A stretch of 64,000 bases of DNA from Trichosphaerium sp. ATCC 40318 (GCA_038496445.1 JALMLS010000027.1:220552-284551), one strand, 5' to 3'; shown: positions 55,880 through 63,471, counted from the stretch's first letter. The notes: generated from the letters alone by a model not told the origin. Numbers and translations: made by a program.

Positions 55880-56653
55880 GACTACTAAGGTGAGGGTATG
55901 CTAAATGTCACTTGAAACACGCTGACTCAGTTGTTAACGGGCAAGCAATTTGTATGTTTACAAGTCGGTTTGTATGTTTTTGACTGAGAATTGCGTATCT
56001 AGCTATATAGAAGTGTAATCTGCTAACTCAAGAAAGTTACTTTTTTTTGGCAATAGTGACACCAAAGCGTTCGCTTTACTAGACAGCCTACATAAAACTA
56101 CTTTCGTGAGGCAAGCGGCGAGCGAGTCTTAAGGAGTTAAGCTCTATAACGCCATAGCTGTACCAGAAAAACAGAAAAAGCTACTATTACCACTCCTTTT
56201 AGTGCATAATTGACAGAACGACGCGTGAATTGCTACTTGGAGACACCAAATGAACATGGGCAGTAAGAACTCGAAGGGAGACGTAATCCCCAAGGTACAG
56301 TTGGCTACGCTTGGCGCAGCGTAATAGTTATTAGGAGCCGTTTGCAAAATTGCTGGAGTCATTTCAGCCGGCAGGTGGTACCAGCGTGCATGAGGTACGC
56401 TGAGTTCGCGTTTAAAGGCTAACTCCGTTATTTAGGTCCTTGAAGCAATAAAATGGTTCCAACGAACAATTAGCGAGATAACCAGCTCTGGAGAAGCCTT
56501 TGCGGTTGACTTGAAATCAGCGCCATTTTGTTCTGTGTTTACCAAATTCTCTCAAGTCCGATCAGTGCTTCTGTCTATGGGTACAAATCGCTTTCAGTTG
56601 AAAGAGTGCTAATAAAGGTTCTTGCAGGCTTCAGAACAAAAGAAGGTGACAAA

Positions 56654-59600
56654 ATGGAATTAAAGCCCGATGAAAAACTACTGGAAACCTTGCAGACACA
56701 GAAAAACGATTTAACAAATGTCGTAACAAAACTAACCGGTACGTTTGATTTTTCTTGTTCGATACGTAAGAAAACGATAAATTACGCTACTTGTTACCAC
56801 TAAAGGAAAACAGAAAACAAGAACTATCGGCTTTTTTAATTTCTCACAAAATCGCCACAAACTTCCCGAAAAATATGCTTTTGCGTTTATTCTTACTACG
56901 CGACTTCATAGCGCGTGTTGACGATGAAAAAAATATATTAAATCGTTAATTTAGCTGGTACTACAAACAAATACGCTTTTCTTCCACATATGGCGCCTGC
57001 ACGCTGGACGGCATTAAAGACTGTAATTTCTGGCAAAGTTGGAAATCTTACAGCTTTTGACAAGTTTTCTGCTAATCTTGGAAAATCCAAATCTGCAAAT
57101 TTCATAAGGTTAGTAATAATCACTTAGATCATTTAAATTACCTTTTTATTCGGTGTGTTTGTTAGCTAATATTTTCTTTTTACAGGGAGTACTACTCAGA
57201 TGCTGCATGTAAAATTAGTGAAGAGCATAAGGCTGAGAGAGGTAAACTTTGGTGACAAGTCTTGTTTACGCTTTTTACACTGGTGTTTTTTTTTCTCTGA
57301 CTATTAACACGTTCTTCTCAGACGAATTTTTTGGCGTCATCTTGCCCTTCATTTCATCGTTGGCACTTCGTGTTGAAGAATTGTTTCCTAAAAAGCTTTC
57401 GTTATTGCGACCAAACAAAAACTCAAAGGTCGATATGAGTAGAGAACAGGTGAGGTTATCTCCTTTTTTTCTTTCTTGTGGTTCACTTTCTGTAAAATTA
57501 ATCAACTCCACAAAGGTGGCTTGTCTTCTGTCACACTTTTTCCTTGGTACTCTAGATGCTCCAAAAGACATTCACGCGTACGATTTACATTTTGTTTGGG
57601 AATATTAATCTAATGATTTTATTCTAGTGGTTTGCCAACCTTCAGTCGTTGCGATTTTGAATTCTTACGTGCAACTGATCAAAAACCTTCCACGAATTCT
57701 GAGGTATATAATTAATTAAGCCTTAATCTCATGGTTTTTACTAGGCTTTAATGTTGTGTATTCTATCATATTTTAGACAACTAGTTAAAGAGATCCCAAA
57801 GGGACAAGTCAGTATTCAAAGACTTGTACGTTTTTTTTAATGAACTTTCCATATTTTGTTTTATTCTTACCTATGGTATTAGAGCGTAGAAAACGATGGT
57901 ATGGACTGGAATAGTAGTGATAAACCTATTATCGATGTTACTGTAAGTAAAGAAGATGTTCTATCCAAATTCCATGTAGAATTCGTCAACACACAACTCG
58001 GTTCAGGTAATTACTGGCGTAAAGTTTTTCTTTTTATTTCGATGTTTAATGTTTTTGAAATAGATTCTGTATACGAAGATAGTTTGTTTGCAATTAAACC
58101 CGAAGCATTTATTGTACGAGATAGGATTCTTCTGTATTTACTTAATTGTGCTACCTAGTCCTTGTTTTTATGTCCACAAATGAAATCTAGCGAAGCTGTT
58201 GTAATTAGTGGTGTTGAACGATTCTCTGAGTATAGCGGATGTAGAGATACCCTAAATTATGAAGGTGCATACAAAGATAAGACGGCCTTTAACGAAGAAT
58301 TGGAGTATGTAAACAATCATATCTTTGGTAAGGATCAAAGATTACTTTTTAATTTGCTAATAATGTTTAAAGTTACAACTGGAATAGCAGGAAAAGATTC
58401 TAAATTTGACAAAGAGTATGTTTATAGTCTTTTTCTTAGTCATGTTATGTTTCTTTTTGGCTCACAGTAGTATAGACATATTTTAGAAGGTGTCATGCAA
58501 GTTTATGTGAGCTTGTGCGTTCCTGATGAGTACTATGTTGGAAAATCTGAGGTTCGCACTGCTACTGGTAACTGGGTATGCTTTATTGTTATTTCAAGCT
58601 ATCAGATGCTAATTAAATTTGGTATAGGGTTGCGGAGACCTTGGGGAACTCAGAGCAGTTCAACAGCTTATTGCTTTATCTCAAGTTGGTAAACCTGCTA
58701 CATATTGCACGTTCAAGAACGCTAAGGCCGCTAAAGTACTAGCATATTAGCAGAGGTTGTGCTAATCATGTGCTAGGAGTTTGAATCATTTGTATCGTTT
58801 TGTACAGAAAACTCCCTAACTGTTGGTAATGTGGTTGAGGCACTGACTTCTTGTACTTCTGGAACTTCTGTATTCGATACATGCAAGGCATATATTACGA
58901 ATAAGACTAAAGCAAAGGTTGACATCACGTACGTATCGAAGAAGAAAAGAAAAAAAAGCCTTTGTTAATCGTGTTTGTTTAGTAATAAGAAAGTGGCTGA
59001 AGTGACTGCAAAGAACAAGAAGAAACGGAGCAAAGTACTATCCATTAGATCCAAGAAGGTATATTACTTGTAAAGTACCATCGCTAGCATCACTCTAACC
59101 CATTTCTTTCCTTTTAGAAGCTAGAAGGTGAAATTCAAAGGTTGGAAGATGAAAGTAAAAGTGGGTCTAAAAGTCCTAACCCTAAAAGTCCTTCTGGAGA
59201 GTTTAAAGCTCCTACTTTTGTACGTCTAGTCTTGATAAATCCATTTTATTGTTTTTAACGTACGTTTGTGAATTAGGGTGGTACAATTGCAGACACTAAG
59301 AATATGAATACAAGTGGTATGTAGCTATTTTTATACAAACAAAAAGTGTTTCAAGGTTTTTTGACTTTTTCCAATAGCTCCAGTATTTAAACGCCCAGCC
59401 TCAACTGCTCGCGGTAAATCACCGTACGTTTTGCCCACGGTTTTTTTTGAAATGGCATGTGCACTTTCTAACAGTTCGTTAGTGTGCAAATGGTAAAACA
59501 AAATAGCAAGAGGAGAAATAGGACACAATCTGTTGATTATACAAATACTGGCGGTTTTGCTGGTACAAGTTTATTATCCAACGAGCTCTTCTTTATACTT

Positions 59601-61924
59601 ACGATTACTGTAGGTGAAGGATTCACATTTGATCCTCTTGCGGGTAAGAAAGGTATCCTAAGAAAAGCCAAAGGACAAAAAAAAGGGCGAGCAAGATTTG
59701 GCACTATTACACGCCGTTCGTTGAAAGAATCCGTTGAAGTCAATCATGTTGCTATGGTAGCCAGTGAGTCTAGAACATTTACCAATGTGCATTTTGTAGT
59801 TGGGGTACGATATTAAACAGTTGTTTAGCAATGGCTGTATGCTAACAAAGTATTCATTTAGGGCGTTGTAATTCCAGCTCACATGTATGTGTTACAGTAC
59901 AGGTGTCCAAACATGTTGGATAAAGCAATTCGTGCTAAAAAAGCGAAAAAAGATGTCACTATTTTAGAACTTCAAGATTTAATGCCTCTTGTACCTGCGG
60001 CACTTGAGCGCGTATTACATTACATATACAGGTATGAAATTATTGCCTTTCATTTTTTTATGATACAACCACGTGCACAGCATGGTTTTTAGTCATTTGT
60101 GGTGTTGTTTGTTTTTTGCTTATTTCGATGCTTAGTGGTGCTTTGGATTATGAAGCAATGAGTGATATTTTGGCTGTATCTGTTATTTATCTCGCTAATT
60201 TATATGAGATGCACCGCTTGTTGGAAATAACCCAACAGTGGTTACTTTCTCAATTGACATTATCAAATGTCTTTAGCGTACTTCGTTTATCTGGAGAGAT
60301 GCAAGTACGTCATAGAAGAGCTAGTCAATACAAGTGATCCTTATTGTTTTTTCCTCTTAGATTAAAGCAGCAAAGCAAGTTTGCTTTCAATTCGCATTAA
60401 ACCATAAAGCCGATTTCCTTTCGAATCAAAAAGTAAAGCTTCTTGGCATTGAGTTGTTTCAAGAGGTTGTATTGATAGTAAGAAGTGGTAAGCACCTCTC
60501 ACTTTGTCAGTAATCTAAAATCTTACCTTTTCTTCAAGATAAAACTTCAGTGCTTCCTAGAGCAAGATTATTGGATAAATTCACCATTAAAGGCGATTTT
60601 ATGGAGCTCTTTGACAAGAAGCAGGTACGGACAGCAACTTTATATCGTAAATATCTTATAATCTTTTGTAGACAACAGGTGACGTTTCCTTTGCAGTAAA
60701 GGGCGGTTCAGTTACCTGTCACAAGGCTCTAATGTCAGAGTACGTTAAACATTTACCTTTTGGTATCTGTTGAAGGTTGTCATGGCTCACTTCAATTTTA
60801 CAGGGCCTCTGATAAATTCAAAGCCATGTTTACTCTCAGTAAGGGAGAGACTTGCAAGTTTGATAAACGTTACAAGGACGTAGATAAGAAGTCATTTACA
60901 GAACTTCTTCGCTGGATTTATTACAAACACAAGGATGTACGTTATATGGAATTTGCTTTGTGTCCAGAGACACGTTTGACGTTTTTTGATTTTGATGTTT
61001 GTCTAATTGCGACTAGATTCCTGTACTTTGTGCTTGCAACCTCGTAGATCTCGTAGAGAGCTATAATATGCCAGAACTATTAAGTGTTTTGACTGAGATT
61101 CTAGAATCGAATGTGAGACCTCAAACAGCACTTTATATCCTGAATGTAACGTATTTACCATGCCTGAAATACAACAAAGCTCTTAAGTACGTTTAAAAAA
61201 ACTCAAACAAACCCACCGACTTTGTAACTCTTCAATTTGACATCTTTTCTAGACAAAACTGTATCAATTGTCTCGTTAAAGAGATGGATACTGTAGATTT
61301 AAAACCTCTCAAAAAAATGAGACCAGAATTACAGAGTACGTTGAAGTTTAAGAAGAGTACTCAATGCCTTACTAAATGGTATTTTTAGACGATCTGCTAT
61401 TCTCTTGGCAACTTGGTATTGGCAAGTTGTGGTTCAAGAGAGAAGAGCCAAAAGTTATTAAAGATACATCCGCCGATGAAGAAGAGAAAAAAGTAGCTGC
61501 TAAGCTAAAGCCGCTTAACCTTGCAGATGGAAAAATGAAGAAGATACGAGAGAAGGACTCAACACGTACGTTGAGTGCTCGTAAATCTCAACAAATGGAA
61601 CAACTAGCTGCAGCTTCTCGAGCGAAGGCAAATGGAACAGCAGATGCTAACAATGATGGTGATGGTGATGATGCTGGTGATGCTATGAGTGAGACTGAGG
61701 ATATTGTATTCGTTCAAAGGAAGAAGAGGGAACCTCTTACCGAAGGAGAGATTTCTGTTGCATCTACTGACAAACCTGTTGAGCCTTCAAAGGAAAAGAG
61801 TGAGGATTTATCTCCTGCAGAAGTTTTACAAAATCTTGAGAGGGAGAAGCGTTTAGCACGCTTGAAGGCTATAAATCGAGGTTCATCTGGAAGGAATAGT
61901 ATTGGTAAAGGAATGAATGAGTGA
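56654..61924 (+). CDS. Poly(ADP-ribose) glycohydrolase (PARG)-like domain fused to two BTB/POZ domains and a charged tail
   Basis: PARG-like: FFGVILPFISSLAL, MSREQVACLLSHFFLGT, CILSYF, EAVVISGVERFSEYSG, ATGNWGCG, QQLIALSQ...YCTF, LTVGNV. Frame-consistent linker exons 58777-59804. BTB1 TNVHFVVGGVVIPAHMYVLQYRCP...ALERVLHYIYSG; BTB2 GDVSFAVKGGSVTCHKALMSEASDKFKAMF...FTELLRWIY. Confidence 0.85.
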
Positions 61925-62613
61925 AAATGTCAAGGCACGTGTTCATTTGGAAAAAAAAAATGAAAAAAAAATACAATAAAATTGGTTTGTTCAGAGGTAT
62001 TGTAGTAACGTCTTTAGAAAGCTCATAACCTCCTTGTCATTCCATTTGCGTGCCATTCATGGCAGTGACTCATGGTATGCTCGCGCATGTAAGGTCGTTT
62101 AACCTTTAATACAAACTGACCCATAAGTCGCCCTTTTTTTTGTGATTTGTTTAACTTCCAACAATGTTCAGAAGACTGTTAGATAGAGCAGTTTTCTACG
62201 TTGTTTATTATTAGCGAATTTTAGGCCTCTCATAACATGTAAGAAAAAACAAGGCCAAGTTTAGAAAAAGTACGAAACGTCATGCGTTGTAGATTTATTC
62301 CCAGGTGTTTGAGAAAATGTATCGTTTTCTGGATAACCACAGAAAAACTTTCGAAATATCTAACCTTGCGTTTGCGCACTGAATACAAGCGTCGAGCGCT
62401 AAACCGCTAACTGTTACGTCGCTGGTGATAACACAAATCTTTTTCTTTGTAATATTACCACGTGGGTTTGAAAAGGCATTTTTTTACCATACAAGCAAGG
62501 CTTTGCTCTTGAACACCTGTATTGAGCAATGTGAAGCGGTTTTCCATTCTCGCTGACCTCACTTAACTGTCCATTTGGAACTTTCTTTAAACAAAGCTCA
62601 ACGCATCTCTAAA

Positions 62614-63471
62614 ATGAAGATTTTCGCTTTCGCTGTTGTATTTCTCTTCGCTTCTACTCTAGCTGTTATTTTACATGAGCAGAAGATTAATTTGCCTAAA
62701 AGAGTCCAGAGTTTCAGTTACAAGAACTGTGGCTCTGCTTCTGACCCTATTAAACTCGAAATGTTGACTGTCGCCCCTGATCCATTGGTACGAGTTAATT
62801 TTTTTTTGTTTCCCTTTTTTACCCTTCTCGTATCAATGTTTGGCCCCTCACACCTTTAGAAACTCGATGCCAACATTACGCTTGCCGTAAAGGGAGACAT
62901 TGGCGTTACTGTAGCCAACCTATCGACTTACAAGGCTGAAGTCGTTATTAAGAAGAAGATCTTGGGTGTCTTTATTGAAGTACCATGTACGTAAGGCTTG
63001 AGCCAAGAATGCCTTTTTTAGTCCGATTTTTCTTCTCTTCTTTTTCTGAAACTCAAACTCCTTTTCTTTGGTTCTCACCCATATTTTTAGGTATCGATAA
63101 CATTGGCACGTGCACATACGATAACTTCTGCAGTCTCTTTAAACCAAAAGACGGAAAGTGCAGCGGTGTTTTAGCTAAATACAACATTCCTTGCGCTTGT
63201 CCTTTGTACGTCTCAAAGTCTTCTGTTGCCACGCGTGCTCATAAATTATCTTTTTTAGCCCAAGCGGAACTTATGCTATTCCTACTCAAGAAGTTTACGT
63301 AAAAGATCCTGGTCTCGGCTGGCTTGTAGGCGTACGTGCACATCTGTTTTTCGAGGTGTATTTTCTGATTTTCTTATTTTTTTTCAGGGAGATTATGAAG
63401 TACAAGGAACTTTGCTTGATCCTGCTGGAAAAAGATTGGCATGTTATTCTCTAACTTTGTCAATTGCGTAA
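62614..63471 (+). CDS. ML (MD-2-related lipid recognition) domain protein, GM2-activator-like
   Basis: Signal MKIFAFAVVFLFASTLA; FSYKNCGSASDP..LTVAPDP; EVPCIDNIGTCTYDNFC; IPCACP; WLVGGDYEVQG; RLACY; stop 63469-63471. Confidence 0.92.

Follow-up and report, generated by a model that had tools for sequence, protein, structure and literature searches.

BTB domains dimerise and often recruit Cul3. The tandem-BTB Cul3 adaptors include LZTR1 (Kelch-BTB-BTB), RhoBTB (GTPase-BTB-BTB) and IBTK. In PAR-dependent ubiquitin ligases (PAR, poly(ADP-ribose)), a reader of the mark is coupled physically to an E3: WWE and RING domains are combined in RNF146/Iduna, CHFR uses PBZ and DTX3L-PARP9 uses macro domains. 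The known links between ADP-ribosylation and ubiquitination rely on WWE, PBZ or simple macro readers. Structures of the eraser PARG are available for the human enzyme (4A0D and 4B1H) and for that of Drosophila (8ADJ). PARGs of some lineages carry additional domains. As the only additional domains, a 2014 survey of PAR systems listed PBZ repeats in Adineta, a Nab2 zinc finger in Entamoeba dispar, G8 in P. pallidum, transmembrane segments in Paramecium and Ribosomal_L32e in Schistosoma, and also noted partly conserved PARG signatures of unknown activity (Perina et al., PMC4245714). Here we describe a predicted gene of Trichosphaerium sp. ATCC 40318 that most likely joins a PARG copy with rewritten active-site residues to two BTB domains. 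It lies on the plus strand at 56654-61924 of the window, the whole 64,000-nt stretch analysed (C62:220552-284551, GC content about 37%), which comes from contig C62 of a eukaryotic assembly of 70 Mb in 642 contigs. An original prediction, made from this sequence, had proposed the locus as a candidate ADP-ribose-reading Cullin-3 adaptor.

The order of parts in the predicted protein is a complete PARG fold, a basic linker, BTB1, BTB2 and a charged tail. LZTR1, RhoBTB and IBTK have the same layout, in which a recognition domain and a linker precede two BTB domains, each followed by a 3-box or, in this gene, by helices that look 3-box-like. Unlike in these adaptors, a PARG fold takes the place of the recognition domain here; a search with the BTB1 exon detected no sequence relation to them, and the φ-x-E motif is less than clear. 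Should ADP-ribose still be bound by the PARG fold, the protein would follow the logic of RNF146, CHFR and DTX3L-PARP9, a reader coupled physically to an E3. However, the reader would be a PARG fold, and the E3 would be a BTB-recruited cullin-RING ligase. The PARGs in the 2014 survey resemble this gene in lineage-specific domain accretion in protists and invertebrates, but no BTB domain and no rewritten signature is described among them (PMC4245714). Full-text literature searches returned no description of a PARG-BTB protein, and the original prediction knew of no such fusion either.

PARG-linker-BTB-BTB is the best gene model, and the architecture is established at that level. The model has 29 exons and 28 introns, all of them GT-AG, with an uninterrupted frame from the ATG at 56654 to a TGA at 61922-61924. 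The predicted protein has 1146 amino acids, or 1150 with an alternative donor in the catalytic loop. Predicted introns are 41-216 nt long, with a median of 57 nt, and the 41-nt length occurs twice. Exon lists were tried by script, and junctions were then reset using tblastx against the PARG paralogs of the same genome and the sole BTB-BTB paralog. Three junctions were moved because of matches in the paralogs, which placed the end of exon 9 at 58113, the start of exon 10 at 58159, the end of exon 11 at 58415, the start of exon 12 at 58476 and the start of exon 27 at 61017. The segment SLFLCPQMKSS is conserved in the PARG paralogs and was placed in an exon instead of intron 9. RHILEGVMQVY matches RNIDRDINKAY of a paralog, which shifted the junction between exons 11 and 12, and IPVLCACNLVDLVE, identical in the BTB-BTB paralog, was assigned to exon 27. 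An open frame by itself was no safeguard against wrong junctions; homology to the paralogs was. In the corrected model, 26 of the 28 donors start with GTA and 22 of the 28 acceptors are TAG. A giant-virus or bacterial insertion is ruled out by the 28 spliceosomal introns. Between 56000 and 62000, GTACGT is the prevailing 5' splice-site hexamer (12 copies on the plus strand, 3 in reverse complement), and TAG is the prevailing acceptor.

The identity of the first domain is clear. Exons 2-7 (56955-57108, 57186-57241, 57322-57449, 57516-57577, 57628-57703 and 57745-57825) encode the PARG helical accessory domain, approximately amino acids 29-214. Exons 8-14 (57883-58018 or -58006, 58064-58113, 58159-58327, 58373-58415, 58476-58575, 58628-58735 and 58777-58928) encode the macro-fold domain, approximately amino acids 215-467. 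When single exons were compared with Pfam, PARG_cat_N (PF20811) matched exon 4 with 36.4 bits over profile positions 8-49 (cut-off 25.6) and exon 7 over positions 96-118. PARG_cat_C (PF05028) matched exon 10 (24.9 bits, positions 75-110) and exon 13 (20.1 bits, positions 169-206). The four matches are collinear, and in a six-frame scan of the genome PF05028 scored 32.5 bits at this locus, over its cut-off. These collinear pieces, with exon 4 and the genome scan above threshold, confirm the full accessory and macro domains of the original prediction. The tblastx blocks in exons 2-7 match five to six PARG paralogs, which have TAG acceptors at the same places. Exon 1 (56654-56738), which holds the proposed start codon in the context gacaaaATGgaa, is less certain than any other exon. 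It is separated by an intron of 216 nt from exon 2, with which homology to the paralogs begins.

The active site has been rewritten relative to the paralogs. The genome contains about 12 PARG loci, this gene and 11 others: two on contig C103 and one each on C10, C22, C132, C38, C35, C27, C5, C21 and C50. The five closest paralogs (C103b, C5, C50, C10 and C38) and C132 keep (A/V)DFAN, GGG-X7-QEE, F(S/T)xY(S/T/E)GY and TGNW. Their diphosphate loop is of the GCGAFGG type: C10 has it exactly, C38 and C132 depart from it by one or two substitutions, and in C103b, C5 and C50 an intron interrupts the loop or only part of it could be read. In the gene under study, the catalytic signature region (57976-58080, interrupted by intron 8, whose end is at 58063) reads VEFVN at 57976-57990 and YED at 58072-58080. 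FSEYSGC follows at 58222-58242, with SEYSG at 58222-58239. The diphosphate loop at 58564-58648 reads TGNW/GCGDLG-ELRA, with TGNWGCG at 58564-58636; it is split by intron 12 (58576-58627), lacks three residues (G-x-x) and has DL for AF. The motifs quoted earlier thus stand at their places, and the signature is truly non-canonical, with QEE changed to YED, in a genome whose closest paralogs are canonical.

Six signature positions are altered together. Asp is replaced by Glu and Ala by Val in DFAN, GGG becomes GSG or the loop is shortened, QEE becomes YED, the Tyr clasp becomes Cys, and GCGAFGG becomes GCGDLG with the three-residue deletion. The canonical GGG-X6-8-QEE after DFAN is absent, as is the Tyr after SEY(S/T)G; in place of TGNWGCGAFGG(D), the first half is kept and DLG-E replaces AFGGD. 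Human PARG chains align SEYTGY to SEYSGC. We take the clasp to be human Tyr795, in a numbering that carries a construct offset and agrees with the chain index. This position is Tyr or Phe in all ten paralogs with a readable SxYxG motif, C35 and C27 being unreadable. In PDB 8adj, GCGAFGgdsYLKAL aligns to GCGDLG...ELRAV, which places the three-residue deletion in the loop. PDB searches with the catalytic-loop open reading frame (ORF) and with exon 9 gave nothing significant. Other residues are shared with canonical PARG. DFAN keeps its Asn, the I-E pair ahead of it keeps the Glu, and QEE keeps its first Glu; SEYSG, TGNWGCG and the Phe of YxTF (TYCTF, equivalent to Phe902) are likewise present. 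The original prediction had stressed that TGNWGCG and ERFSEYSG remain. Both are present, but the residues adjoining them have changed, to the clasp Cys and to GCGDLG-E with its deletion. The whole protein also carries about 680 extra C-terminal residues, which include the two BTB domains, in comparison with canonical PARG. The two-domain fold of the latter is shared and collinear, starting at the helical domain and reaching the LTVG helix at the C-terminus.

The scaffold of the domain evolved at an ordinary rate. Over 195 query-anchored scaffold columns, the branch leading to this gene measures 0.70, against a median of 0.61 among seven PARG paralogs, in a tree that is an unresolved star. It is thus the pocket in which the changes cluster, a pattern known from pseudoenzymes. 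Other PARG copies in the genome vary at the signature too: C22 reads LHIGH...QEE, C21 reads GGC...QQE, and C103a and C27 read NFAD..PGGT.

Two donors can end exon 8, 12 nt apart and both in frame. Donor 58019 (ggc/GTAAAG) gives LGSGNYW/HSVYED, LGSGNYWHSVYED, that is GSG-X6-YED, a loop within the X6-8 range. Donor 58007 (cag/GTAATT) owes its existence to the codon for the third Gly of the former GGG and gives LGS/DSVYED, or GS-X3-YED. Five paralogs have a phase-1 intron after GGGAL(H/S)/G, exactly where donor 58019 lies. Homology of position therefore favours 58019, whereas a splice matrix favours 58007 (7.2 versus 4.5 bits). This matrix was trained on the gene itself, and it told apart neither the two strands nor the two donors. 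The Gly loop had been described as lost; this holds with donor 58007, but with the homologous donor 58019 the loop is GSG-X6 and of normal length. Use of both donors would give two isoforms that differ by GNYW in the active-site loop.

Both BTB domains are real. BTB1 (amino acids 629-728) is encoded by exons 20-22 at 59778-60304, and 3-box/BACK-like helices follow in exons 22-23 up to 60487. Exon 24 (60539-60624) forms the linker between the two domains and is conserved with the BTB-BTB paralog. BTB2 (amino acids 823-910) is encoded by exons 25-27 (60672-60739, 60804-60936 and 61017-61186), and with the helices of exon 28 (61253-61335) this segment spans 60672-61335. Single exons scored below the Pfam BTB cut-off of 20.5, with 13.2 bits for exon 21 and 18.1 bits for exon 26. 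The joined model was therefore scored with a surrogate profile, distinct from that of Pfam, for which we used 16 stop-free BTB domains found in this genome above the Pfam cut-off. BTB1 reached 28.4 bits over profile positions 3-96 and BTB2 31.0 bits over positions 3-91, while 500 shuffles gave at most 7.3 bits. The predicted tandem is thereby borne out, with nearly the whole surrogate profile covered by each domain. The 3-box-like helices after each BTB were judged by eye only.

The only close BTB-BTB paralog lies on contig C4, at approximately 492,900-495,200 on the minus strand. It has the same intron positions and a probable start MPAYITSDEDN.... Identity is 63-65% over BTB1, 85% over exon 27 and 55-85% over the BTB exons overall. 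The first 23 amino acids of exon 29 are also common to the two genes. The same-strand gene directly upstream of the C4 copy has TPR-like and SGNH-hydrolase-like parts and ends about 840 nt before it. PDB searches with the BTB exons, including exon 21 and two-sequence profiles of exons 21 and 22, gave no significant match. An ESM Atlas search gave nothing usable, and a lookup of contigs encoding the last-exon ORF found none on record. The sole match to the BTB1 exon among 1.84 billion protein representatives is a 426-amino-acid bacterial protein with six near-identical 70-amino-acid repeats (TPVYNGETPVKDSDAEFNYVF...), which was judged to be chance.

The two halves are connected by a lysine- and serine-rich linker of about 150 amino acids with the basic clusters KKKRSK, PKRRNR and KAKGQKKGRAR. 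These clusters resemble nuclear localization signals (NLS) and suggest a nuclear protein. Intron 14 (58929-58982, GTACGT...TAG, 54 nt) contains the in-frame TAA 58965-58967. It is followed by bridging exons 15 (58983-59058) and 16 (59118-59219), which together span 58983-59219, are rich in Lys, Ser and Glu and hold the NLS-like KKKRSK; neither family of paralogs has an equivalent of them. When the genome was searched at the DNA level for another copy of the linker or a haplotig, no sequence besides this locus was returned. Exon 17 (59277-59316) has an in-frame ATG at 59304, which may have been the start of an ancestral or separate BTB-BTB gene; the first exon of the C4 paralog occupies the matching position. 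Exons 18-20 (59378-59423, 59507-59562 and 59614-59804) encode a basic, disordered lead-in and the first strand of BTB1. The lead-in is shared with the C4 paralog, whose exon 18-like exon has the same phase and SARGKKK in place of STARGKS; the pattern GKKG...RFGTI..RS..EVNHV is common to both as well.

We considered whether two ordinary neighbours have been mis-joined. A PARG-like gene of about 470 amino acids would then end at 58965-58967, or at 59255-59257 after exon 16, and a BTB-BTB gene of about 615 amino acids would start from the ATG at 59304. Several observations weigh against a single gene and fit this arrangement, and a search for sequencing runs over 56600-61950 listed none that could show a junction. 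With intron 14 unspliced, the PARG ORF reads ...VDITYVSKKKRKKSLC* and stops at the TAA where the paralogous PARGs end. Of six PARG paralogs, four stop 5-23 amino acids past the CKxYI helix; in a fifth the distance is about 60 amino acids, and the sixth was unreadable. One paralog has a basic tail of its own, ...KKKRKKSLC*. The C4 gene has no PARG upstream and seems to start at its own ATG in the exon that matches exon 17, and the same BTBs lie downstream of none of the 11 other PARG loci. Loose splice signals gave an open linker path in 30% of shuffles, so phase compatibility alone, on which the original prediction had leaned for a continuous gene, is weak evidence, although the open path itself was found. 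Under stricter rules such paths are rare. An open, phase-compatible path from the exon 14 donor to exon 17 with at least 178 coding nt was found in 0.3% of shuffles with GTA...TAG signals and in 0.8% with looser acceptors; for the whole linker with GTA...TAG, an open path occurred in 3.6%, and in 0.3% with at least 300 coding nt. Exons 15 and 16 are coding-like in the frame of the model: by codon usage, exon 15 would rank among the top 0.8% of presumed non-coding windows and exon 16 among the top 0.2%. They contain no ATG, so they could be translated only as a continuation of the PARG frame. The best-scoring donor of the region, GTACGT at 58929, lies inside the PARG ORF just upstream of the old stop. 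The gap between two genes would be 336 nt, or 46 nt if exon 16 belongs to the first, compared with about 650 and about 840 nt for the two tandem neighbours that could be measured. The hexamer AATAAA, which may be the poly(A) signal of this organism, does not occur on the plus strand anywhere in the 5.3-kb gene, although base composition predicts about five copies; there is none between 56611 and 61975, and the sole plus-strand copy after 56611 is at 61975-61980, 51 nt past the final stop. The probable history is therefore that two tandem genes fused, with intronisation of the former stop and the gain of two exons, and two separate genes are unlikely. A decaying pseudogene or chance ORF without function would agree with a single-copy, lineage-specific gene whose active-site motifs are degenerate. 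However, about 1150 codons stay open across 28 introns with consensus splice sites, divergence from the paralogs equals that among the paralogs while frame and fold-level homology are kept, and the BTB exons retain their high identity to the C4 gene. We ruled out a decayed pseudogene on the intact ORF and splice sites, and consider any such functionless reading extremely improbable.

What the fused protein would do is harder to judge. Loss of the catalytic Glu to Asp and of Gln to Tyr, together with the altered Gly triplet, Tyr clasp and loop, suggests that PAR hydrolysis is probably lost or very slow. The description of a dead eraser is thus likely to be right, but one acidic pair (Glu-Asp) persists. 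Several points speak against a Cul3-coupled reader. ADP-ribose binding is itself uncertain, since the Tyr clasp is lost and the diphosphate loop is altered and three residues shorter; some residual activity is possible, given the Glu-Asp at the catalytic pair and the canonical loop length with donor 58019. At the place of the φ-x-E contact to Cul3, alignment to our own profile shows K-A-K in BTB1 and K-G-E in BTB2; by this alignment the motif is missing from BTB1, and of it BTB2 retains the Glu alone. A role as Cul3 adaptor would therefore follow from the habit of the family, not from the sequence. One exon-level search of the 1.84 billion representatives with the BTB1 exon found no orthologue in another organism, no real relative and no kinship to the LZTR1, RhoBTB or IBTK families. 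The original prediction of a reader-adaptor is partly supported, by the architecture and the non-canonical pocket, but it assumed an intact ADP-ribose pocket, whose clasp and loop have changed.

Three other functions can be set beside a target-binding adaptor. The PARG part may still be an enzyme, an ADP-ribose glycohydrolase that is slow or has moved to another substrate, such as a different linkage; the BTB pair would then dimerise or localise the eraser or control its turnover. The homologous donor gives GSG-X6-YED with a loop within X6-8, and the DFAN Asn, the first Glu, an acidic second position, the Phe902 equivalent and TGNWGCG are retained; partly conserved signatures of unknown activity are also on record in published surveys (PMC4245714). 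Nevertheless, the six signature positions have changed jointly in a genome where none of them is altered in five paralogs, and the gene has lost the Tyr clasp as well as half of the diphosphate loop. In addition, the catalytic Glu, which we take to be human E756, is Asp here. We find this retained enzyme quite unlikely. Nucleotide binding could instead be wholly lost, leaving the PARG fold as a protein-protein module only, for instance a decoy or substrate receptor that binds a PARP, a canonical PARG or another partner. The distal-ribose and diphosphate loops are both altered, the adenine-stacking Tyr is gone and the scaffold is conserved at the ordinary rate of the family. The ligand contacts that remain, from the Glu of the I-E pair, the Asn and the first Glu to the Phe902 equivalent and TGNWGCG, are not expected in a freely drifting pocket, and we regard this possibility as similarly doubtful. 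The same low standing applies to the most novel proposal, that the PARG fold reads PAR or a related nucleotide mark without cutting it, within a cullin-3 adaptor, and that retention of intron 14 could act as a switch between a free pseudo-PARG and a ligase-coupled form. ADP-ribosylation and ubiquitination would then be coupled in a third way that evolved independently. Tentatively, we prefer one gene of about 1150 amino acids that encodes a BTB-dimerised nuclear adaptor, whose PARG fold no longer cuts PAR usefully and binds a target instead.

We suggest the following path to such an adaptor. Two independent genes in tandem, one a PARG paralog and the other of the BTB-BTB type, probably became joined, and we infer a single transcript. 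The old PARG stop codon would have been taken into an intron and the two bridging exons newly recruited. During or after the fusion, the PARG pocket would have been rewritten and its scaffold kept. The PARG fold may then serve as a target-binding module for ADP-ribosylated proteins, a related ligand or a partner in the PARP pathway, and through the BTB pair a ligase of the cullin-3 type, or some other partner of BTB domains, may gain access to this target. Retention of intron 14 would yield a free PARG-like protein from the same locus. The toolkits for ADP-ribosylation and for BTB proteins are both large in this genome: exon-level matches point to at least 12 loci for PARP catalytic domains, at least 70 for BTB domains and at least 6 for cullins. 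A reader-adaptor mechanism is plausible. If true, the use of a PARG fold for recognition in a BTB adaptor would be a solution not known before, and nature would here have made a binding module out of an eraser. Interest is limited by this being a predicted gene in single copy in a single species, with a pocket that may not bind ADP-ribose. The internal controls in the same genome, at least 5 canonical PARG paralogs and one BTB-BTB paralog without a PARG, make the case experimentally tractable.

The 3' part of the locus has further features. Exon 29 (61389-61924), which ends with the TGA, encodes a charged, low-complexity and coiled-coil tail and has the top codon-usage score among all exons. 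AATAAA is found within about 25 nt of the stop in two of five paralog 3' flanks. The next plus-strand gene downstream, at 62575-62859 and on, opens with the signal-peptide-like MKIFAFAVVFLFASTLA.

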